A stretch of 63,599 bases of DNA, filler included, from Octopus bimaculoides (GCF_001194135.2; 5 parts of 4 records of this genome joined end to end with filler, not necessarily neighbours in it), one strand, 5' to 3'; counted from the first letter of the whole stretch, positions 27,736 through 41,311 are shown. A program made the numbers and translations. Notes: a model not told the origin generated them from the letters alone.

Positions 27736-27818
27736 TGATATATATAGGTATATGTATGTATGTATGTATGTATGTATTTATGTCTGCATCTATACATATG
27801 TATTTAATCCTGTTTCAG

Positions 27819-27976
27819 TTTAGAAAACAACATAGAAATATTTGCAATTTACTGCGCTGTACCTAGTGAAATTAGGAAAGATGAAGCTATGCAGAATATT
27901 AACAATGTTCTGAATACATCACTGACTTTGCGTAACTTAAGAATTCCGCACCGTAACATAGAATTAATTGGAGAAA
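27819..27976 (+). CDS. aGPCR exon c (phase 2 to 1): LENNIEIFAIYCAVPSEIRKDEAMQNINNVLNTSLTLRNLRIPHRNIELIGE
   Basis: taatcctgtttcag acceptor and GAAA|gtaagt donor; open frame is in phase with the next exon. Confidence 0.85.
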
Positions 27977-28250
27977 GTAAGTAGTGCGTTTCTTATTATT
28001 TTTATACCAATCAAAATCTTCATATCATCATCGCGAAATATTCAGCGGCATTTCGTTCGTATTCACGTTCTGATTTCAAATTCCGCCGAGGTTGACTTTG
28101 CCTTTTGGCCTTCTGGGCTTGATAAAATAAGTACCAGTTGAGTACCGGGGACGATGTAATGGACTCACCCTCTCCCCTGAAATTGCCGGCCTTGTTGCAA
28201 AATTTGAAATCGGTGCATATCTCACGCATATGTTTTTTCTTCTTTTTCAG

Positions 28251-28362
28251 TGTTTTGTAATGAAGACTCATCAACTGACAATGGTACTTTTTATTGGCCG
28301 ATGACAAAAATAGGAAAAAACGTGACGATTCCATGCCATGCAAATGTAGCAAGAAGACACTG
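28251..28362 (+). CDS. aGPCR HormR exon 1: MFCNEDSSTDNGTFYWPMTKIGKNVTIPCHANVARRH(C)
   Basis: Long polypyrimidine tract then cag; C..WP.T..G....PC HormR signature; donor TG|gttcgt is atypical. Confidence 0.92.
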
Positions 28363-29608
28363 GTTCGTTTGTATTATTTTGTTTCTTCTCAAATTTCGAA
28401 GTTTTCACTTTCATCTCTTTGTGAGAGAATGTTACACAGTAAACTAAATAAAACACCTACAGAGATTACGATTACAGAATTTATGTTCGTCAATTCAAAA
28501 CATTTAACACTGTTTTACATTCTATACTAAGTGGTATAATTTTGTCTTGATCTACCAAGGATTTGGTTAGCAGCCAATATGATCGAAAGTTTTAAAGATT
28601 TTGTTGTATAGATTCATGTAATTACCTGGATATTCACGTCACAAATTGACCGTAGGAAAGGAAATACATATTTATTTACGCAGCCAACAGAATCTATCAG
28701 CAATTCTACTGATTTCAGAGTAAACTTTGTTTGAAATGTTAGCACAAGGCCAGCAATGTCGGGGTAGGGATGTAAGTCGATTAAATCGACCCTGATGTTC
28801 AACTGGTACTTCTTTTATCGACTCCGGAAGGATGAAAGGCAAAGTCGACCTCAGAACGTTAAGACGGATGAGATACCGCTAAGCATTTCGTCCGGTGCTC
28901 TAACGATTCAGCCAGATCACCACTTTATTTCAGGGTAATATTATTTATTCAATTATATGATTGCCTTAGAAAAACATGCTTTGTTGCTACATGGTGGTGA
29001 GCGAAGAAAGCAGACCGTCCTAGGACTTGACCCATCATTATGAAATGTAACACGGTGATTCTTCTTTCGTTTCCACTACACCATTCCACGTGCTAAATCT
29101 CTAAATCGTTCCTCTCGGGGGCTGAATTTTATAAGGTTTAAAACAAGATCAAAAAGCGAAATTAGTCAAATCTGTGCATGTAAAGGAAAATCTACTTCCG
29201 CCGCTATAGCTACTGATGATCATCGTCATAATCCTCATGTTATGATGATGACGATGACGATGACGAAATATAAATAGGTAAGTCTCCCATTCAGCAGCAT
29301 AGTAAATTAATATTTCACCACCCACACCATTCAAAGCAACCTTGTATTAAATAATCATGACAGCAAATTGTAATAAATAAAAGCAGAAGAAGCAATATCT
29401 GGCTATAAAATATTTTACATTAGTATTGAAGATTGGGAGGTGGAGTAAATAATATATCGCGGACAAAATACATTACAGCATTTGTCCTTGTTCCGTTAGA
29501 TTATGAGTTCAAATCACGACCTGGTCAATGTAATTCTTGCATTCCTCTGAGATGGGTGAAATAAGCGCGATCAAACACGACTGACAATGTATTACATTTA
29601 AATTTCAG

Positions 29609-29778
29609 CTCTTCCAGAAAGGCGGTAGATCTAGAAATACAAACAAACCAAAATATGATATCACGAGAGTGTTCGCCATTTACCGGTATCTGGCAGGAGC
29701 CAGACATGTCTCAGTGTTACAATACAGAGTGGATCACTCGACAACTAAAGAACATCACAAGCCAAGACATCGATGAAG
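29609..29778 (+). CDS. aGPCR HormR exon 2: SSRKAVDLEIQTNQNMISRECSPFTGIWQEPDMSQCYNTEWITRQLKNITSQDIDE
   Basis: tttcag acceptor and GAAG|gtgagt donor; W..PD.S.C motif completes the HormR domain. Confidence 0.93.
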
Positions 29779-30641
29779 GTGAGTAAAAAATGGTTTCGAA
29801 ATATTCTTATAACCGCGAGTCCGCTGCCCTAACCATTGGGCCATTGCGCCTCCGCTGTCTGTTGCTATAACATAGTAAAATCAAGGACATTTTTTGAAAG
29901 TATTCAATGATGTTATGACTTCAATTTCCGTCATGGCCGTGATGATGACTTATCTATATTAAGATTAGATCAGCGAATAGTTTTTGTTGTCTTTTTCTTT
30001 CTTGATTCACCTTGTCATTAGAACAATAACTTTATTCAAATTTACGGCCATTTATGATGGTGTCTCACAGCTACGATACGCCATCGTAAACATAGACTGA
30101 CGTATCACCGCTCATTGGTTGTCATTATTTGCAAAGCATCCATCAACAAGTGTATATCTTACTCAGCTATAAAGGATCCTTGTCCAATTAATGATACAAA
30201 ATAGGAGAAACTAAGGATGTATAACAATGAGTATTGGTCCTAAAGCTGGCACAAAAATCGCCATTAAAGAGAAACTGCATGAACAGTATCACGTCGGCAC
30301 CAGTGTAATGGTGAAAGGAAAGAAAGGGAACAAGGAATAGAATTTTTCTTTCTCTCTCTCTTGTGCAACTGTTACTTCAACACACATAACAAGAACAACA
30401 ACAAGATTATTGTTTCTCAACATCGGCTTTGTTTTTGTGTCCTCGTATCGAGAAAATTTTATTCCTTGTTCCCTTTTTTTCCTTTCACCATTACAAGTAT
30501 ATAACTGATGAATTGAACGCATTAAGCAGTCTTTGTGCTACTATCTCATTAATTGTTCTGTTGTGTTTAATTTGCATCTAGTATTTCGTCTCAGAGCGGT
30601 TGTAAAGTCCCTTAAATTTTATGTTAAATTTCCCATTGCAG

Positions 30642-30873
30642 AAAACGTTGAGCCGGTTTCAACAAAACTCCTGAATATTTCAGAGAAATCAGTGTATTTC
30701 AAAGCAGAAGATATTGACTTGGCTGTAGACACACTTGAGAAAATGGTGCCATTGATATCGAATGTGTCCGTCAATATAACACTGAACAATATACTTCCTA
30801 GCATCAACTATATGATAAACAAACCGGAAGAGGTTTTGGTTGAAGCTGGACAGTCAGAGAGAACTGGGGAAAG
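30642..30873 (+). CDS. aGPCR GAIN subdomain A exon: ENVEPVSTKLLNISEKSVYFKAEDIDLAVDTLEKM...GQSERTGER
   Basis: ttgcag acceptor and AG|gtaaaa donor; amphipathic helical GAIN-A-like sequence; phases 1 to 2. Confidence 0.92.
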
Positions 30874-30904
30874 GTAAAATTCATATCACATTTGTTGTTA
30901 GTGC

Positions 30905-30945
<41 letters not shown>

Positions 30946-31139
30946 AAGAAGAAGAAGAAGAAGAAGAAGAAGAAGAAGAAGAAGAAGAAGAAGAAGAAGA
31001 AGAAGAAGAAATGGCATCGGCAGCAATAGTAGCACATAAATATTTACTAATCAATATAATTAGTGCAATTACATCTATAGTGAATTACGTATTTGAAACA
31101 TGCTATCAGTTGAAAGTTGCTTTTTCGGTTTTCTTACAG

Positions 31140-31311
31140 AATGCTGGACGTCATAGAAATAATCCCAGAAAAGATTCCACTGGAAAAGCAGCAAGTCGCG
31201 GTTTCGTATTCTAATCTTGCTATTGGTGCTGCCAAAGTGGATAAAGACACTTTCAATGGTCTGATCTTTGCTGTTTCATATGGAACCAATGAAACGAAAG
31301 CGAGGAGTGAG
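31140..31311 (+). CDS. aGPCR GAIN exon: MLDVIEIIPEKIPLEKQQVAVSYSNLAIGAAKVDKDTFNGLIFAVSYGTNETKARSE
   Basis: ttcttacag acceptor and GAG|gtacga donor; phases 2 to 0. Confidence 0.92.
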
Positions 31312-31810
31312 GTACGATACTGTCTCTTGATTACTCTCTTATCAAGTGTCTCTTTTAAACCGCCATGAAATACATTAAGTAAGAAATACATTAGAAAGAA
31401 ATACATTAGTAAGAAATGTAATATCTTTATTGTCAGATGTGGTTGTTATAGTACAAAGCTTCATNNNNNNNNNNNNNNNNNNNNNNNNNNNNNNNNNNNN
31501 NNNNNNNNNNNNNNNNNNNNNNNNNNNNNNNNNNNNNNNNNNNNNNNNNNNNNNNNNNNNNNNNNNNNNNNNNNNNNNNNNNNNNNNNNNNNNNNNNNNN
31601 NNNNNNNNNNNNNNNNNNNNNNNNNNNNNNNNNNNNNNNNNNNNNNNNNNNNNNNNNNNNNNNNNNNNNNNNNNNNNNNNNNNNNNNNNNNNNNNNNNNN
31701 NNNNNNNNNNNNNNNNNTTATAAATTCTTATGGCGTCAGCAACATTCAGCAGCAGTAGTATTTTTTTTTTATCCATCAATTTCAATTTTTCTTTCATTTT
31801 TATCCACCAG

Positions 31811-31957
31811 ATATATAACAACTCAAACTCACAAGTAGAAGATGTGATGGACTTCATTTCTTTACCAAAGAGTTTATTAAAACATCTGAATGACGAAGAA
31901 CAGTCAAGTCTTTCAAGGATTTCGTTTTTGTCTATGCATGAAGATAAGCTTTATAAG
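31811..31957 (+). CDS. aGPCR GAIN exon: IYNNSNSQVEDVMDFISLPKSLLKHLNDEEQSSLSRISFLSMHEDKLYK
   Basis: Polypyrimidine tract then ccag, AAG|gtattg donor; ISLP.SL and RI.F....D.LY are GAIN-B motifs. Confidence 0.93.
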
Positions 31958-32642
31958 GTATTGTACAAAAATGGAATTATTTCTTAAGGGGGTTCGCAAA
32001 AGAATGCCTGAATTCATTGCTACTTTTTGATAACGAAAGAAACAATATTAATATAACACAAGAGCTTTGATGAATTGCTTCATCACACCAAGTTATATGT
32101 GCTGTGAGGAGAAGGGAAACGATGTTTTTCCTATCAACCAGGCGGTCATTAACGATGTTTATGTCACACGGCGTCAAACTGTTTCTTGGGGGTGGGAGTC
32201 ATCCTTTTTTCACCCAGTGATCCTTTGTAACCCTACTGTCCCAGTAACACAAGAGACAAGAGTACTTAGAGTAACCTCCTTGCTGGCCCAGTAGAAGGTT
32301 TACCATTTTCAACTATTGTAGAAATCATTTATCTCAAAGTGCCATGCAGTGAGATTGAACGCAGGATACGTTGATTACCAAGAGACCGTCTTAAGTGCAC
32401 AGACATACCAACAGCTCTTAATGCAAACAATTTGTATATAAAAGCAAGTTATCCATTCCTTAGAGCAAGGACAATCCTCTGCTATGAACTCACATGTAAT
32501 ATATATTGTAATATATATTGTATTAAGTTGTGCTGACTAAAGCAATGATGTACAACTCTGGCGTTTGGTTTCATGCTTTAACGATGTATTAATAAACTTT
32601 TCTATGAAACTAAATACTTTATCTAACGGCTTCTCTTTGCAG

Positions 32643-32771
32643 GTAACACAAAAATCTAGTCCCAAAGCAAATGCTAAAATTAACAGCCATATTATTGCTG
32701 CAAATATTCCTAACGTTCAAATAACCAAGCTTGATGAACCAATTAGAATATCCTTCAACGTAATAGATCCG
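32643..32771 (+). CDS. aGPCR GAIN exon: VTQKSSPKANAKINSHIIAANIPNVQITKLDEPIRISFNVIDP
   Basis: ctctttgcag acceptor and CCG|gtaagc donor; INS.II.A and L.EPI.I.F GAIN motifs. Confidence 0.94.
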
Positions 32772-32945
32772 GTAAGCACTATGTAGTTGTTGTTGTTGTT
32801 GTTTCATTGCAAAGGTCATGCTTCACTCCTGACGTAAACGTGGACCACGGCGGTACAAAAAGTATTAGTAATAGTAGCTGTTACTGTGTTGACAGCTATA
32901 ACTTATTGTATGTTGATATTTTATCACCATTATATTGTTTCAATG

Positions 32946-33326
32946 TGGAGGCACAATGGTCCAGTGGTTAGGGCAGCGGACTCGCGGTCATAGGATCACG
33001 GTTTCGATTCCCAGACCGGGCGTTGTGAGTGTTTATTGAGCGAAAACACCTAAAAGCTCCACGAGGCTCCGGCAGGGGATGGTGGCGAACCCTGCTGTAC
33101 TCTTTCACCACAACTTTCTCTCGCTCTTACTTCCTCTTTCTGCTGTGCCTGTAATTCAAAGTGTCAGCCTTGTCCCACTGTGTCACGCGGAATCTCCCCG
33201 AGAACTACGTCAAGGGTACACGTGTCTGTGGAGTGCTCAGCCACTTGCACGTTAATTTCACGAGCAGGCTGTTCCATTGATCGGATCAACTGGAACTCTC
33301 GACGTCGGAAGCGACGGAGTGCCAAC
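32946..33326 (+). mobile_element. SINE S2, full length, in the intron before the GPS exon
   Basis: A and B boxes intact (tggtccagtgg; ggtttcgattccc). Confidence 0.9.
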
Positions 33327-33567
33327 AACTACATAGATTTATAAACGAGATGGAATAATCAGTTAAGCTACATTGCAAACAGTGATGTTGAATTCACAAT
33401 GTCAATACTAACCAAACGTTGATGACCATCGTCTCTTCTGTTATTTTGTTAGTCAATTTAAATTCATTACATGTATTTTAATTGCTTGCATATTAATTTA
33501 GATTCATTTCAAGTATTCCAATTGCAAAGTAATTTGATTAAATTATCAGAACTTAAATTTTTTCCAG

Positions 33568-33720
33568 GATTTAACCAATCCACAATGTGTTTATTGGCAT
33601 GAATCTCCTGAACAGAATAATTCTCATTGGTCAACAGAAGACTGTGATATAGCCACCTCTGGACCTGGAGAGAAAGTGCTTTGTTCCTGTCACCTTCTTA
33701 CAAGTTATGCCCTGTTAATG
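33568..33720 (+). CDS. aGPCR GPS exon: DLTNPQCVYWHESPEQNNSHWSTEDCDIATSGPGEKVLCSCHLLTSYALLM
   Basis: tttttccag acceptor and ATG|gttagt donor; C.YW...WS...C...C.C...T..A.LM GPS pattern. Confidence 0.96.
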
Positions 33721-34034
33721 GTTAGTAACATTTTGACAAGTTAATTGTCTGTAATTTGGAAATTGTGCCTAAGCATTAATAATTTCAACAGCTATTAAAC
33801 CTAGTGTTGGTGGTTATTTTAGTAAACATATGAGGTTGATAAATTGTAAAACGTCACAGTTGTTCTCGCTTCTCTTGTTGTTTATTAGTTTAAACTCAAG
33901 ATGTTGTCCTTTACAGGGACCAAGCTACCATCCTCAATCAAATGCATGCAAATTCTCCCCCAATACGAGAGAAACAGTCACCGCTCTTGGTTTAAAATTT
34001 ATTGTGTTGCAACTATCTGAATGGTAGTCTAAAT

Positions 34035-34315
34035 CAGGGGTTTTCAAACTTTTTGACTTGCGGACCCCTTTATATTTCAGGCTTTACCTTAGGGACCTCC
34101 CTTATAAAGGCTTATGAAATTTATACATAAATATTTGCTTAAAATAACATATATTTTTACATTTGTTTATTTAACAGTATTTAACAAATAGGTTTATTGT
34201 CAATTAAAAGATTTCGATTAAAAAACATATATAAAATCAAATTGCCCATAAAAAGTATTTGCTGTCCACGGACCCCCCTGTCTTGTCCTTGCGGACCACT
34301 GTTTGAAAACCCATG
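34035..34315. mobile_element. hAT (Charlie-like) MITE family A
   Basis: cagggg ttttcaaac TIR; TSD gtctaaat / gtctaagt; inverse of 41015-41311. Confidence 0.9.
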
Positions 34316-35395
34316 GTCTAAGTGACAGAGACATATTTGATATATACTAGATCTCCATACCACAATAAATATGTTTGCGGCTTAGATGTTAAACCCTTGG
34401 TCTCTTGATGATCCTGTTGCAAAGTATAAACTCTCATTCACGAGATTTCTCCACCTGAGACTTTTATGTCAATAATGCACAGGTTTCCAATATCTGTCAG
34501 TTTTACAACACCTCTGCTACCCATAAAAATAAAACATACCCCTATCCATTGTACATATTTTAGCCTAAAGGAATAGTTGAAGTAATGCAATATGATACTT
34601 CACTCTATACCAGTTCTACTATCACCTGACATCACAAGGACAGAGATTAAATGGTTGAGTCACGGATGTCGTGTCTCATTGTCAGTGTTGTCAGGAACAT
34701 TATTGAATCAATTCACCTGTTGTCTCTTTGTTATTGTCTTCATTCCTGTTATCTCTTTTTTCCAAAGCAGTTTTAATTTCACATTTCTTTCTGCATCCAG
34801 ATATTCATTCATCACATATTTCCAAACAAGCTTGTTCCATTTTGTCATGGCTCACAATCTATAGTATCCATGACCAAAACATCTCTGAAGTGGACAAGTC
34901 CTCCTACTTCTTAAAAACAACTGGAACTATAGTATAGTACCAAGGATCTTATAAAGCAATATTATCTTCATTTTTTCCTGATGTTAAGTAAATGAGAAAA
35001 AAATAACTACTTCTTACAAACAATACCAGTCTATCTCAGTTAACAGATAGTTTACGTAAAGCAGCTTGAATTAGTTGTACTGACAACATATACTAAGATA
35101 TACCTTCAGTGGATTTGAGCTCAAGAGCGATGGGTTGGTGGTACGTTCTAACTCGACTTAGAAATCTCATATATATATTATAAAGACAGTGAAACTTCAT
35201 ATTAGAATTAGCTGTCATTTAACGGGTAATAGAAGATGACCCCCGCTAATATATTGTTTTTAATGCAGCTAACTGTAGTTCTCACCTCCAATATCAACAT
35301 TATATGCACACAAATTATTTATATAAGTCTTGACTTAGCATATAAGGAAGGAAGAGGAGGAGGGAATAATTCGTTGTTGTCTGTTTCTATTACAG

Positions 35396-35508
35396 GAATC
35401 CGATGAAAATGAAGGCGATACAAAGAATAATCATCTCTTATCTTTTATTAGCAGTGGAATATCACTTCTCTGTCTCATTCTTACCATGATAGTTCATGTT
35501 TGTTCCAC
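35396..35508 (+). CDS. aGPCR TM1 exon: ESDENEGDTKNNHLLSFISSGISLLCLILTMIVHVCS
   Basis: ttctattacag acceptor and AC|gtaagc donor; hydrophobic helix with GIS..CL motif. Confidence 0.92.
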
Positions 35509-35871
35509 GTAAGCATATCAGTTTCTATTTCCTTTCATAAACTGTTTAAATACAGAAAAACAGCATCCATTAGTTTGTGGATCTCTCACAGATTGGTAAA
35601 ATTGATGTAGTTGATATCTGCAGGAAAAACCATGGATGAGCACAAAAAATAATAAACGTAGTATTTTATGTCTCATACAAGTCATTATACACAGATATTT
35701 TACACCACATCTATATACATTCTATATTTAAATTTGATATATCATGTATATCCCAAGTGACCATCACCCATACACACAGTTGTATCTATTATTCATGGGT
35801 TGAGTGATTTAATGTTTTATGAGATTTAAACTTCGTTAGATGAATTATTACTTCCTTTTTAATTATTTCAG

Positions 35872-35995
35872 AAATCTGTGGAAATTAACGGATTCAAAAA
35901 TGTTGGTAAACATGTGCAGTTCTTTAACTGTCGCTAATCTTGTCTTTGTTGTTGGGTTGCTGGGATATGGTACAGAAATAACAGCTGTTTGTAAG
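35872..35995 (+). CDS. aGPCR TM2 exon: NLWKLTDSKMLVNMCSSLTVANLVFVVGLLGYGTEITAVCK
   Basis: attatttcag acceptor and AAG|gtaagt donor; includes the ECL1/TM3 cysteine. Confidence 0.94.
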
Positions 35996-36079
35996 GTAAG
36001 TGAAACCACATTAAGCCAGTACATGTTTTGGTTTATATCAAAGATTATGAACAATAGATTTTACCGTTAATAGCTTTAA

Positions 36080-36343
36080 TCCAAGAACTTGGGAGGTAAA
36101 ACAGTTGTAGTGATACCAATAATTGTCGGAGCCCTGGGAACAGTGAGTAAAAATGTCGAGAAGTACATGGAACAAATAGGGGCTGCAGTAAGGGTGAAAC
36201 ACTTGCAGAGAACAGCACTGCTTGGAACCGCTCGAATACTCCGGAAGGTGCTCGAAAAATAAGAGGTGTTACCTTAGTTCACTGGTAGTGAACAGCTGAC
36301 ACCGTAGTACATCTCCAGCGTTAGGAGCTGTGCAAAGACAATA

Positions 36344-36410
<67 letters not shown>
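36080..36410 (+). mobile_element. Dong/R4-clade LINE 3' end with (AAT)n tail
   Basis: 36098-36262 reads KTVVVIPIIVGALGTVSKNVEKYMEQIG...LQRTALLGTARILRKVLEK*. Confidence 0.88.
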
Positions 36411-36417
<7 letters not shown>

Positions 36418-36598
36418 CATCGAAAACTACCTTAGGAATGAGAACCCAGGGTTCGAAATTTCCCCAAGACACTTGATGAAAGCTGGAGGGTATATGAACC
36501 GAAACGTTGTGTTAACAACAAGCAAGATGAGGAGAAATATCCGTCAAATGTAAATAATGTACATAATTCCTCATCTCTTAAATATAGAACTGTATTAT
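36418..36598 (+). mobile_element. Hammerhead-bearing short repeat module (same family as 61528-61890 and 63198-63420), stem II damaged
   Basis: GACAC-UUGAUGA-A-[mismatched stem II]-GAAACGUU-GUGUU at 36468-36513. Confidence 0.75.
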
Positions 36599-36690
36599 CT
36601 ATACTCCATCCTCGCAAATTAATATATATTCGAGATCATATGTCAATGTCAGATATTATTACTGTTATCGTTTTTTTTCTGTTTGTGTAG

Positions 36691-36829
36691 GCAATGGCTG
36701 TTCTGATACACTACTTCATTTTGACATCTCTTATGTGGAAGGTTGTAGAAGCATTTCATATTTATCTAGATGTCGTTCGTAAAACATATCAGACGTCTTC
36801 TGTGAAGAGGAGTTCAATTTTGGCCTGGG
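36691..36829 (+). CDS. aGPCR TM3 exon: AMAVLIHYFILTSLMWKVVEAFHIYLDVVRKTYQTSSVKRSSILAW
   Basis: gtttgtgtag acceptor and TGGG|gtacgc donor; HYF.L....W...EA.H.Y motif. Confidence 0.95.
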
Positions 36830-37249
36830 GTACGCATAACAGTTTTCTGTCATTCTGTTAATGATTTCATTTCTCTCTCTCCCTCTCTCTCTCTCTCTAA
36901 CATACACATTCTTTCTCTTTCTTCTATTGGTGAGATGTGAAAGTAGCTGAAGCGAGATGTAAATATGGGGATACAAAAGTGGATGAAATATAACGTAATA
37001 TAACATATGATAAACTTAAAGAAAAATATTCTCAGAATTAACCATAACATCAACCTGAAATTATTTTCATTTTTATGCAAATAGTTTCAGCTTGATCACA
37101 TCGCTAGACGAAACCATTTCGCACAAAGTAATACAGCGGATGTGGGCAAATATATGACGATATTTATGTTTCTTTGTTGAAGAACAACTTGATGTATTGG
37201 TGAACAGTCAACAGCGTTGGAGAGCATAAAGTTTAAGTTTGTAGTTGAG

Positions 37250-37735
37250 AAAAAGTTAACTGACATGTCAAACTGGAAACCGTCTGAATATTTGGAAAGA
37301 GTTACCTATTTTGTGATGACTCGCGCCAGGTATCATAATGCAGATGTCATGACTGTTGTTCAATGCCTTTTAACACGATGAAGGCTGTAAGATACGACAT
37401 GGACAGCTGCAACAGAGACTGCGAAGTTGTGGCCAGCAAGAAGGGACACAGTAGGCATTGTGACTGCGTCATGCTGCACCGCATCTTTGAACTGGTTCAA
37501 TTCAGACGGGTATGTGAAGCTGTTTGGAGACTGCGGGCAAACCGTTGCTAGAAGGCCATATGTGTGCCAGGAGGATTCGACTCTTTGCTATACCTCCGGA
37601 ATGAATCAGAAGTGGCTGTCGGGGACTTTCTACACCTTCACCAGCCCCAGTTTCTGATCTCCTAATTTCCCCAAGTCTAACCCCATGGATCACTATGTGT
37701 GGAGTGCGATTGAGAAAGACAACAACCGTTCTACT
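37250..37735 (+). pseudogene. Internally deleted maT (DD37D-like) Tc1/mariner remnant
   Basis: VVASKKGHSRHCDCV; NSDGYVKL...RPYVCQEDS...QKWLS..FYTFTSP; NPMDHYVWSAIEKD. Confidence 0.75.
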
Positions 37736-37800
37736 TATGATTGTAAATTTTCATTGATATCTACATATGTTTTATTCATTTCTGTATATATCGTTGTCAG

Positions 37801-37873
37801 GTCTTCCAGCTGTCATTGTCATAATTACTCTGGCAACTAACGACACAAACAATTACATCAGAATTGGACAATT
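37801..37873 (+). CDS. aGPCR TM4 exon: GLPAVIVIITLATNDTNNYIRIGQ
   Basis: cgttgtcag acceptor and TT|gtaagt donor; completes the WG.P motif. Confidence 0.93.
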
Positions 37874-39113
37874 GTAAGTATTTATGTGTTTTGTTGCCCT
37901 AATTTTATCTAGTCTTCACGACAGAGTAATGGTTTCAAATTTCAGCACAAGCAGAGTAGTTTCGGTGGAGGAAAGTAGTCGCTTACATCGACCTCAATGC
38001 TGAACTGGTACTTATTTTATCGAAACTGGATTATGTGGCAAACTGGATGAGAGTGGCAAGGAATAGTATCTGGGAAATAAAAACTCTAAAAAGGTCTGTG
38101 TTTAGAAGAAAGGACAATAAATAGAATAACAAATTAACAGATTGGACACCATGTTCAGAAAAACAAAAGGCTTTGTTAAATTCTTCAGCACCTGAACATG
38201 GATGAAGAAAATATCTGACCATGGTTGGTGGATCGAACATACTGCGTCATTCGTCCATGTGCAAAGATGATATTATATATATATATATATATATATNNNN
38301 NNNNNNNNNNNNNNNNNNNNNNNNNNNNNNNNNNNNNNNNNNNNNNNNNNNNNNNNNNNNNNNNNNNNNNNNNNNNNNNNNNNNNNNNNNNNNNNNNNNN
38401 NNNNNNNNNNNNNNNNNNNNNNNNNNNNNNNNNNNNNNNNNNNNNNNNNNNNNNNNNNNNNNNNNNNNNNNNNNNNNNNNNNNNNNNNNNNNNNNNNNNN
38501 NNNNNNNNNNNNNNNNNNNNNNNNNNNNNNNNNNNNNNNNNNNNNNNNNNNNNNNNNNNNNNNNNNNNNNNNNNNNNNNNNNNNNNNNNNNNNNNNNNNN
38601 NNNNNNNNNNNNNNNNNNNNNNNNNNNNNNNNNNNNNNNNNNNNNNNNNNNNNNNNNNNNNNNNNNNNNNNNNNNNNNNNNNNNNNNNNNNNNNNNNNNN
38701 NNNNNNNNNNNNNNNNNNNNNNNNNNNNNNNNNNNNNNNNNNNNNNNNNNNNNNNNNNNNNNNNNNNNNNNNNNNNNNNNNNNNNNNNNNNNNNNNNNNN
38801 NNNNNNNNNNNNNNNNNNNNNNNNNNNNNNNNNNNNNNNNNNNNNNNNNNNNNNNNNNNNNNNNNNNNNNNNNNNNNNNNNNNNNNNNNNNNNNNNNNAT
38901 TTTATCTTCCAATATAAAAACACTCGAAAACATGTCCAAAAATGTGTTTTCAAGTGTGTTTATATTGAAATATAGAGTTAGTTAACAATGTAAATCGTCC
39001 ATAACTCACTGCAACTATAAGGATACCATGTCGTTTCCTTCTGGATCAAAAACCCCTGACTGAACATTCAAAGGGCCTTTTTTAATTGAATTTCTTTTTT
39101 TTTTTTTTTGCAG

Positions 39114-39505
39114 CTGCTGGTTACCCAACTCATACTTCTACGGTGCCTTCCTGGGTCCCGTGATGATCATTCTTACCTTCAACATCACCATGTTTTTTCT
39201 CGTTATGTACCGTCTCATCTCAAAGTCAAACGACAAGAAATTTGAACACGCATCAAACAAAGCACGTATTTTTGGCATGGCTGGTTCGTGTCTCCTACTT
39301 GGGGTGCCGTGTATCTTAGCATTCCTCTTATTTGACAAAACAACCAAACTCATTATTACCCTCTTGGCAATTTTCAGTGTCCTTCAAGGACTCTTTATCT
39401 TCATATTCTACTGTATATGCAAAAAGGATGCCAGACATGTCGTCTGCCTGTGTTTATGCAAACGAAACAAAGTACATCTGAGCCAAGCTCCGAAGGATAT
39501 AAGAA
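39114..39505 (+). CDS. aGPCR TM5-TM7 and helix 8 exon: CWLPNSYFYGAFLGPVMIILTFN...LLGVPCILAF...SVLQGLFIFIFYCICKK...APKDIR
   Basis: (t)n-gcag acceptor and AGAA|gtaagt donor; CWL, P......N and LQG.FIF motifs; Cys-rich juxtamembrane tail. Confidence 0.96.
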
Positions 39506-39855
39506 GTAAGTGCAATTTGGTCTCTCTTGTCCTTGCCACCCTCAAAAACAATATTGTCGTGATGGGGGATAAACGCAAACATCGCTTCTGTCAGCACCAC
39601 CACTATCAACATCACCATTCTCAGGACGGACGGACAGACATCGTCACATATACCAATTCAACTGTGGTTGTTGCCGTTATCGTTATCATCATCATCATCA
39701 TCTGTATATGTATGTATAGATATATATATATATATATATGCTTATATGTAATATATATCTGTATATAAAATATGCATATGTATGTATAGATAGATATGCA
39801 TATTTTATATACAGATATATATTACATATAAGCATATATACATATATATACATAA

Positions 39856-40224
39856 GGAGCACTCCATTGGTTACGACGTGGGTTCCAGTTGTTCCGATCA
39901 ACGGAACAGCCTGCTCGGGAAATTAACGTGCAAGTGGCTGAGCACTCCACAGACACGTGTACCCTTAACGTAGTTCTCGGGGATATTCAGCGTGACACAA
40001 GGCTGGCCCTTTGAATTACAAGCACAACAGAAACAGGAAGTAAGAGTGAGAGAAAGCTGTGGTGGAAGAGTACAGCAGGGTTCGCCACCATCCCCTGCCG
40101 GAGCCTCGTGGAGCTTTTAGGTGTTTTCGCTCAATAAACACTCACAACGCCCGGTCTGGGAATCGAAACCGCGATCCTATCACCGCGAGTCCGCTGCCCT
40201 AACCACTGGGCCATTGCGCCTCCA
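39856..40224 (-). mobile_element. SINE S2, full length, in the last aGPCR intron
   Basis: Reverse complement of 32946-33326, including an identical stretch of roughly 95 nt. Confidence 0.9.
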
Positions 40225-40444
40225 CTCTTTACGACATAGTCCCGATAATTAATTCCTCAACCTCTCACAGCTTATGTAACAACTAAATTGTGTTGTTCAA
40301 CCATGCTTCTTCTTCATGTAACATCTTTTCACAAATGGCGAAGCAGCAGACGACAATTGTAGCTACATATATAAAATATAAGGGCCAGGGAATATTGAGT
40401 CAAAGCTTATTATTTTATATATAATTTCCACATTATGTTTCCAG

Positions 40445-40497
40445 GTTCAAGCTCCGGTAATGTAGCAGAAAGAAAAACAGAAGAAGCAAACTTATAA
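40445..40497 (+). CDS. aGPCR last coding exon: SSSSGNVAERKTEEANL*
   Basis: tatgtttccag acceptor; phase 1 matches the previous donor; ends in TAA. Confidence 0.8.
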
Positions 40498-41014: not shown

Positions 41015-41311
41015 CAGGGGTTTTCAAACTGTGGTCCGCGGACCACAGGGGGTCCGCAAGGACAAGACAGGGGGTCCGTGGACAGCAAATACTTTTTATG
41101 GGCAATTTGATTTTATATATGCTTTTTAATCGAAATCTTTTCATTGACAAGAAACCTATTTGTTAAATACTGTTAAATAAATAAATGCAAAAATATATGT
41201 TATTTTAAGCAAATATTTATGTATAAATTTCATAAGCGTTTATAAGGGGGTCCCTAAGGTAAAGCCTGAAATATAAAGGGGTCCGCAAGTCAAAAAGTTT
41301 GAAAACCCCTG
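41015..41311. mobile_element. hAT MITE family A with a perfect 8-bp TSD
   Basis: TIRs caggggttttcaaact / agtttgaaaacccctg; TSD ctataatg at 41007-41014 and 41312-41319. Confidence 0.95.

Follow-up and report, generated by a model that had tools for sequence, protein, structure and literature searches.

An octopus adhesion GPCR paralogue with leucine in place of the catalytic histidine of the GPS, a probable single-chain receptor

INTRODUCTION

Adhesion GPCRs (aGPCRs) that cleave themselves at the GPS use the His of an H-x-S/T triad to take the proton of the Ser/Thr(+1) hydroxyl, which attacks the preceding peptide bond and leads to an N-to-O acyl shift and ester hydrolysis (PMC13062082). An aromatic residue at S10.49, where Phe-to-Tyr is fully tolerated in L1, holds the catalytic His in place through a T-shaped pi-pi contact, and the His also forms a hydrogen bond next to Gly-Cys(S12.50), the Gly of which is strictly conserved in the cleaving human receptors (PMC13062082). 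When the His was restored in BAI3, cleavage reached only 6.5%, and it reached 24.5% when the aromatic partner was added (PMC13062082). Downstream of the scissile bond, Phe+3 of the Stachel is among the most conserved positions (PMC9046087; in vertebrates, PMC13470171), and the roles of the toggle switch Trp6.53 and its hydrophobic core partner Met3.47 have been described (PMC9046087).

The GPS consensus "is frequently lost in evolution" (Prömel et al., PMC3776922). The H-x-S/T triad is lacking in 10 of 32 human aGPCRs (PMC13062082); in vertebrates it is conserved in only 17 of 33 receptor types, and 30.6% of 13,611 sequences are predicted to be non-cleaving (PMC13470171). Function without cleavage has been reported for LAT-1 (PMC3776922) and for Cirl H>A, G5 and D1 (PMC13197933). 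The closest described systems are receptors of this kind such as ADGRB1/B3 (R-L-S) and CELSR1, in which the GAIN/GPS fold with its Cys and Trp residues is complete and the 7TM domain is intact, a residue unable to take up a proton stands at -2 instead of the base, and function does not require cleavage. BAI1 and BAI3 still give CTF-sized fragments in the brain, so that loss of the motif is no strict proof that processing is absent in vivo, and slow cleavage that needs no classical base is found in SEA domains and in some GAIN variants (PMC13062082).

In octopus, Ritschard et al. (2019; PMC6408891) described an octopus-specific expansion of aGPCRs, 'group 3', with LRR domains, tandem clusters, signs of positive selection and axial-nerve-cord expression. 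The gene analyzed here is listed in that work (A0A0L8GB41 / Ocbimv22036511m, class B, group 3), and GPS variation is not discussed there. In this study we compared the cleavage site of this gene with those of its octopus paralogues and of other aGPCRs.

RESULTS

Gene structure and domains

The window is the whole stretch of DNA that was analyzed, 63,599 nucleotides including filler, and positions are counted from its first letter. The piece that carries the gene is intron-bearing eukaryotic DNA of about 36% G+C and showed 0 mismatches to chromosome CM046629.1 of GCA_001194135.2. Paralogous proteins were mapped onto the piece to build a spliced model, which has canonical splice sites and reads through in a single open frame. 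The independently built model is 100% identical to P0009 (= XP_014782543.1, 698 aa), which is already annotated as 'adhesion G-protein coupled receptor G6 [Octopus bimaculoides]' (A0A0L8GB41 / Ocbimv22036511m). All 13 introns are GT-AG and the 699-codon reading frame is open. A partial query covering exons 7-13 matched eight paralogues at about 50-55% identity. The last coding exon, taken from P0009, ends with '...EEANL' and the stop codon; a C-terminal exon ending in '...ETN' and a stop, for which a pattern search of the piece gave no match, was rejected. The gene and its domains are arranged as follows.

27889..40497, + strand: coding span of 14 coding exons; splicing reproduces the 698-aa P0009 exactly
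27889-27976, 28251-28362, 29609-29778, 30642-30873, 31140-31311, + strand: coding exons 1-5
31811-31957, 32643-32771, 33568-33720, 35396-35508, 35872-35995, + strand: coding exons 6-10
36691-36829, 37801-37873, 39114-39505, 40445-40497, + strand: coding exons 11-14
28251..29778, + strand: HRM-like domain on two exons (weak Pfam HRM match, E=2.8e-4, that does not reach the curated cut-off; Foldseek 4dlo, 8oek)
29609..33720, + strand: GAIN domain exons, helical subdomain A and beta subdomain B (AF2, Foldseek)
33568..33720, + strand: GPS exon, DLTNPQCVYWHESPEQNNSHWSTEDCDIATSGPGEKVLCSCHLLTSYALLM; Pfam GPS (PF01825) E=1.9e-11
35396..39505, + strand: seven-transmembrane domain (7tm_2) on five exons, Pfam 7tm_2 E=3.4e-28

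XP_014782543.1 is an adhesion GPCR (class B2), with a secretin-type 7TM domain and a GAIN domain that includes the GPS, placed directly ahead of TM1. The AF2 model of P0009 (mean pLDDT 73 for the whole model) consists of the helical subdomain A, the beta subdomain B and seven helices; the GAIN helices (106-212) and strands (219-402) have a pLDDT of about 80-95. In Foldseek searches the GAIN domain matched the zebrafish Adgrg6 ECR (E=3e-18), the BAI3 HormR-GAIN (TMt 0.63) and BAI2 (0.61), the HRM region matched the HormR-GAIN crystal structures 4dlo and 8oek, and the 7TM domain matched aGPCR 7TM structures with a TMt of 0.7-0.87. Among solved structures the best matches were vertebrate ADGRG2 (phmmer against chain 7xke_R, E=7.6e-53) and ADGRG6 (E=1.2e-48), and both the GAIN and the 7TM folds agree. 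The likeness to ADGRG6 is limited in other respects. At the sequence level it is only about 26% identical to fish ADGRG6; LRR and Cys-rich regions are found in family members instead, and a Pfam search of XP_014782543.1 found no CUB or PTX domain. Unlike XP_014782543.1, ADGRG6 keeps the canonical H-L/T (H-F-T in the solved chain), Phe+3 and Trp6.53. One-to-one orthology to ADGRG6/GPR126, which has a CUB-PTX-SEA-HormR-GAIN architecture, was rejected because CUB/PTX are missing, identity is about 26% and there are dozens of octopus-only paralogues; the NCBI name 'ADGRG6' reflects similarity and is not evidence of orthology.

The annotated start codon at 27889 is probably not the true N-terminus, since similarity to longer paralogues extends in frame beyond it in the upstream direction (27817-27976 in the window, 'SLENNIEIFAIYCAVPSEIRKDEA'). 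LRR and Cys-rich exons of the type usual in the family lie farther upstream (L004 4689-5100 and 6821-7318), where they are annotated as a separate LRR gene.

Two assembly gaps, 31465-31717 (253 N) and 38297-38898 (602 N), are both intronic, and no coding sequence is missing. The introns also contain a perfect (AGT)n tract of about 14 units followed by (AGA)n of about 22 (30905-31010) and a perfect (AAT)n tract of about 24 units (36344-36414). A degenerate (TA)n run (39705-39854) starts some 200 nt past exon 13. Two inverted pairs of SINE-like repeats, 32945-33305 / 39873-40225 (93-94% complementary) and 34099-34277 / 41070-41248 (97%), flank exons 8-13, which extend from the GPS exon to TM7, on both sides, and the paralogue array L001 contains many copies of these elements. 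Repeats inverted within introns are able to pair into double-stranded RNA, which might bear on editing or back-splicing.

The cleavage site and its register

Positions 33682-33720, at the 3' end of the 153-nt GPS exon, read TGT TCC TGT CAC CTT CTT ACA AGT TAT GCC CTG TTA ATG, which translates to CSCHLLTSYALLM. The exon has AG / GT borders; a polypyrimidine tract and AG precede it and GTTAGT follows it. Its 51 residues alone matched Pfam GPS (E=1.9e-11) over all 45 profile positions, so the site is not a chance motif. No alternative GPS exon was found in the piece, as the GPS peptide of every paralogue matched 33565-33720 only. The initial annotation had read C-S-C-H-L-L-T-S-Y here, with CTT at 33694-33696, and the translation bears this out.

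The spacing from C-x-C to A-L-L-M is identical to that in the solved ADGRG2, ADGRG6 and ADGRL3 sequences in an ungapped alignment, and also to that in 36 other octopus family proteins and 124 broader representatives. This fixes the register, in the numbering of the annotated 698-aa protein, as His392 = -3, Leu393 = -2, Leu394 = -1, Thr395 = +1 and Tyr397 = +3, and the register proposed earlier, with Leu at -2, His at -3 and Tyr at +3, thus holds against the solved sequences and about 160 homologues. A shifted register with H392-L393 as -2/-1 was rejected, because it would put Leu394, which is no nucleophile, at +1. The positions concerned are listed below.

33691..33702, + strand: cleavage-site positions -3 to +1, His392 CAC, Leu393 CTT, Leu394 CTT, Thr395 ACA (canonical x-His-Leu/Thr)
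33694..33696, + strand: Leu393 codon CTT, position -2 (CAT, His, in the family alignment)
33700..33720, + strand: Stachel / tethered-agonist core T-S-Y-A-L-L-M (consensus TxFxxLM; Phe+3 to Tyr)
33706-33708, + strand: Tyr397 codon TAT, position +3 (TTT>TAT against relatives)
33640..33642, + strand: Asp375 (GAC) for Gly (GGC) of the Gly-Cys motif, the second autoproteolysis determinant (codon alignment)
33592..33594, + strand: Tyr359 (TAT) in C-V-Y-W, aromatic S10.49, retained (by its spacing to -2)

The H-x-S/T triad is therefore absent from XP_014782543.1, and so is the Gly of Gly-Cys (Asp375-Cys376). The aromatic S10.49 is present as Tyr359, which lies 34 residues from position -2 against 33 for F803-H836 in rat L1 (hand count); among 37 octopus family members this residue is Tyr in 32 and Phe in 5. 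The GPS residues C357, W371, C376, C389 and C391 are invariant and W360 is nearly so. In the AF2 model, residues 392-395 (H-L-L-T) form the turn between the last two strands of the GAIN domain, 387-391 and 396-402.

Derived substitutions

Codons were compared with five paralogue/sister genes. Coding DNA was recovered for genes of the sister clade and the next clade, and the comparison also took in three further paralogues. At the cleavage site all five relatives read AAC/AAT/TAC-CAT-CTT-ACA-AGT/AGC-TTT, and the differences in XP_014782543.1 there and elsewhere in the protein are the following.

Position -3: relatives AAC/AAT/TAC (Asn/Tyr), XP_014782543.1 CAC (His)
Position -2: relatives CAT (His), XP_014782543.1 CTT (Leu)
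Position +3: relatives TTT (Phe), XP_014782543.1 TAT (Tyr)
Gly of Gly-Cys: relatives GGC (Gly), XP_014782543.1 GAC (Asp)
39310..39312, + strand: Cys617 (TGT) at the toggle switch 6.53b, relatives Trp (TGG), from alignment and codons
36739..36741, + strand: Lys497 (AAG) at 3.47b in TM3, relatives Met (ATG), from alignment and codons

Each of the six changes is a single-base substitution on the own lineage of XP_014782543.1. Since the five sister and outgroup paralogues keep CAT, CAT>CTT is derived, and the earlier statement that the Leu codon is one base from CAT agrees with all five genes. Restoration of His(-2) by RNA editing was considered and rejected on the sequence: A-to-I editing, common in cephalopod neural transcripts, yields A>G only, and CTT to CAT would need T>A.

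The GPS could be read in 37 octopus proteins, of which 32 have His at position -2, 3 have Arg, 1 has Tyr and XP_014782543.1 alone has Leu; in the broader set it is His in 123 of 124 representatives, and Leu occurs only in XP_014782543.1. The residue before Cys in Gly-Cys is Gly in 36 of 37 octopus proteins and 123 of 124 broader ones, Asp being found in XP_014782543.1 only, which also has the single Tyr at +3 (Phe in 36/37 and 124/124). In the Stachel core Thr+1, Leu+6 and Met+7 are kept, and Leu+6 and Met+7 are two of the three deep-binding residues. Of the residues characteristic of Stachel-activated aGPCRs, Trp6.53 and Met3.47 are absent (Cys617, Lys497), and Gln7.49 and Gly7.50 are retained. 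Lys at 3.47 is found only in XP_014782543.1 among 30 aligned proteins; Trp6.53 is also missing in P0012 and P0018, both of which have Leu.

An earlier impression, gained from a smaller alignment, of a strong cluster of changes in the Stachel apparatus was dropped: 3 of 9 key positions for cleavage and the Stachel are changed against 23 of 170 conserved positions overall, which is not significant (P=0.105). A tendency for His(-2) and Trp6.53 to be lost together in the octopus family is only suggestive; two of the four His-less proteins also lack Trp (Fisher P about 0.07, phylogenetically uncorrected).

A further difference was observed at the start of TM1, in exon 9 (35396-35508). Compared with all aligned paralogues XP_014782543.1 has a three-residue deletion, reading '...LLSFIS', the gap and 'SGISLL' against '...LLSIISNVGCGISFV', which removes the conserved I/V-G-C of the (Y/N)-(I/V)-G-C-G-I-S motif.

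The octopus family

The gene is a member of the published octopus-specific aGPCR expansion. The family is octopus-only: O. bimaculoides, O. vulgaris and O. sinensis together contribute over 40 proteins at 45-65% identity, and a tandem group of three paralogues lies on the same chromosome at a distance of about 60 kb. By neighbour-joining, the sisters of XP_014782543.1 are O. vulgaris P0010 and O. sinensis P0011/P0005, and the next clade comprises O. bimaculoides P0001 and P0003. When synteny with O. vulgaris P0010 was compared as a sign of orthology, upstream exons were collinear, a feature common to every paralogue, and downstream only repeats were shared. XP_014782543.1 has in common with 'group 3' tandem clustering, LRR-bearing N-termini, axial-nerve-cord expression and a high dN/dS. 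In contrast to 32 of the 37 members, which keep x-H-L/T-S-F, only XP_014782543.1 has Leu(-2), Asp before Cys and Tyr(+3).

Within the expansion at least three independent losses of the cleavage motif are seen, in XP_014782543.1, in P0018 and in the P0023 group. P0018 reads D-Y-L/T-S-F, lacks Met+7 and has Leu for Trp6.53; P0023, P0043, P0051 and P0098 read D-R-L/K-S-F, with both the base and the Thr nucleophile lost; and P0012 keeps H-L/T with Leu at 6.53 (all six are O. sinensis / O. vulgaris proteins). P0018 and the P0023 group share with XP_014782543.1 the independent loss of His(-2) within the expansion and, in P0018, the absence of Trp6.53; they differ in having Tyr or Arg at -2 and in lying on different branches of the tree.

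Two side observations concern the paralogues. The NCBI model P0003 ('ADGRG6 isoform X1') spans 81 kb of the paralogue array (L001 10001-91698, O. bimaculoides CM046629.1) and joins exons of two tandem paralogues. Since further called genes lie within its span, the model is likely to be a chimera produced by annotation. Exon 5 with its flanking intron (31036-31342) is 90% identical in DNA and 91.5% in protein to the paralogue at L001 10419-10726, about 60 kb away, against 72-80% for the other exons. This excess identity suggests a gene-conversion tract between paralogues.

Constraint and expression

By three-taxon branch estimates the lineage of XP_014782543.1 has a dN of 0.14-0.18, a dS of 0.17-0.26 and a dN/dS of 0.69-0.80. 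The bootstrap interval runs from about 0.5 to 1.00-1.17 and reaches 1 in three of four comparisons, which leaves room for a recent relaxation of constraint. The dN/dS of the family is also high, 0.48-0.77 between paralogues, with which the published positive selection is consistent. Between P0010 (O. vulgaris, L002) and P0011 (O. sinensis, L003), dN is 0.05, dS 0.045 and dN/dS about 1.1, so that even the copies of these sibling species seem to be very weakly constrained or under diversifying selection.

About 4.65% of the single-base changes in the coding sequence create stops, so a fully neutral branch would be expected to carry 16-25 stop-creating substitutions. None was found (P of none < 1e-7), which limits any neutral phase to at most about 13-18% of the branch. 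No frame disruption or broken splice site was found across the 699 codons and 13 introns. At the columns conserved in the family XP_014782543.1 deviates in 13.5%, against 14-16% in the canonical P0020, P0021 and P0027; in a smaller alignment it departs uniquely at 27 columns that do not vary otherwise, compared with 2-13 for eight paralogues. The published proportions of expression (PMC6408891, Table S2) are 0.50 in the axial nerve cord, 0.29 in the subesophageal brain, 0.10 in the supraesophageal brain and 0.04 in the optic lobe, with a tau of 0.91, that is, tissue-specific. These results argue that XP_014782543.1 is no dead pseudogene; it is divergent, but not out of the ordinary for a family that evolves this fast.

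DISCUSSION

A single-chain receptor as the most probable explanation

We suggest that XP_014782543.1 is a live, neurally expressed paralogue that is naturally cleavage-incompetent and remains a single chain, a reading to which we assign a probability of roughly 0.68. Its gene has lost the general base His(-2) by CAT>CTT and the adjacent Gly of Gly-Cys by GGC>GAC, while Thr(+1), Leu(-1) and the Tyr at S10.49 remain. With no base for Thr395, the N-to-O acyl shift would be too slow to matter. In that case the chain would remain undivided, and the extracellular part would not be shed to expose the Stachel. Any signalling by such a receptor would have to be cleavage-independent. A possible route would be the non-dissociative exposure of the still largely intact Stachel T-S-Y-A-L-L-M, and an adhesive role independent of the 7TM domain may be an alternative. 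The accompanying replacements of Phe+3 by Tyr, Trp6.53 by Cys and Met3.47 by Lys point to an agonist-sensing core that has been re-tuned or weakened, and any signalling would probably run through this altered core.

The initial annotation had already called the site uncleavable on the basis of the -2 residue, unless the shifted His takes over, an exception that our comparison does not support. The published His-base mechanism supports this as a prediction from sequence, and the change of Gly375 to Asp beside the lost His, which the initial annotation had missed, strengthens it. XP_014782543.1 shares with ADGRB1/B3 and CELSR1 the complete GAIN/GPS fold, the Cys and Trp residues, the intact 7TM domain and a -2 residue unable to accept a proton. 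It differs from them in having Leu at -2 with a His displaced to -3, a combination absent from about 160 homologues, and in its altered Gly-Cys Gly, Phe+3 and Trp6.53. The loss is also recent and lineage-specific, in a clade that otherwise keeps H-L-T.

Alternative explanations

It could be proposed that constraint on the gene has been relaxed and that it is on the way to becoming a pseudogene, so that the losses of His(-2), Gly375, Phe+3, Trp6.53 and Met3.47 and the TM1 deletion are all signs of decay. The lineage dN/dS, whose bootstrap upper bounds lie at 1.00-1.17, the 27 unique deviations at otherwise invariant columns and the number of mechanistically important residues that are lost are in agreement with this proposal. 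However, the 699 codons are open and the 13 introns canonical where neutrality would have given 16-25 stops, canonical paralogues deviate from the family as often, the high dN/dS is family-wide with positive selection reported, and the published expression is neural and tissue-specific. We therefore consider decay unlikely. An error is far less probable still. It would mean that the CTT at 33694-33696 stems from sequencing or assembly, or is a rare allele, and that the real gene has CAT. The difference is indeed a single base, and XP_014782543.1, A0A0L8GB41 and the assembly all come from one genome project, with no independent contig carrying the protein. Nevertheless, the exon is otherwise in frame and clean, and the gene has three more unique single-base changes within 22 codons (G375D, N392H and F397Y) and two in the 7TM domain; a lone sequencing error cannot explain several unique changes in the same gene.

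The receptor might still be cleaved, if His392(-3), another base or strain activates Thr395, or if another protease cuts nearby in vivo. This is improbable in our view, although Thr(+1), Leu(-1), the aromatic S10.49 and all the GPS cysteines and tryptophans are kept, a His stands only one residue away, and both slow base-free cleavage and the brain fragments of BAI1/BAI3 (PMC13062082) offer precedents. Neighbouring side chains in a beta-strand or turn point to opposite faces, and His392 is adjacent to the catalytic position. Rescue of cleavage by His392 is unlikely, and His(-3)/Leu(-2) occurs in no homologue among about 160; elsewhere His at -3 is found only alongside His at -2 (P0083, P0111). 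Moreover, the supporting Gly is also lost, and the low cleavage of BAI3 with its His restored indicates that further supporting residues are needed (PMC13062082). A different view of the single-chain receptor is that the changes represent coordinated re-wiring and not decay: after H393L and G375D, the agonist (Phe+3 to Tyr) and its pocket (Trp6.53 to Cys, Met3.47 to Lys) would have been remodelled. We regard this as doubtful. If true, it would mean an adhesion GPCR activated outside the canonical Stachel/toggle-switch route. Less likely than such re-wiring is that His(-3)-Leu-Leu/Thr forms a working, register-shifted autoproteolytic site.

Implications for the octopus aGPCR expansion

The gene and its family have already been annotated and published, and XP_014782543.1 most likely joins the naturally cleavage-deficient adhesion GPCRs, a well-known condition. 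Loss of the motif is ordinary, as about a third of aGPCRs lack it and cleavage-independent function is established, and the general picture is unchanged. If our reading holds, nature would have carried out a loss-of-cleavage experiment in this gene, with close relatives that remain competent for cleavage. Considering that sister genes at about 60% identity keep H-L/T, Gly-Cys, Phe+3 and Trp6.53, the revertant swaps L393H, D375G, Y397F, C617W and K497M could reveal which residues are sufficient, and these swaps would be informative on both cleavage and tethered-agonist signalling in an invertebrate receptor. The finding adds detail to the octopus-specific expansion of aGPCRs expressed in the nerve cord of the arm.
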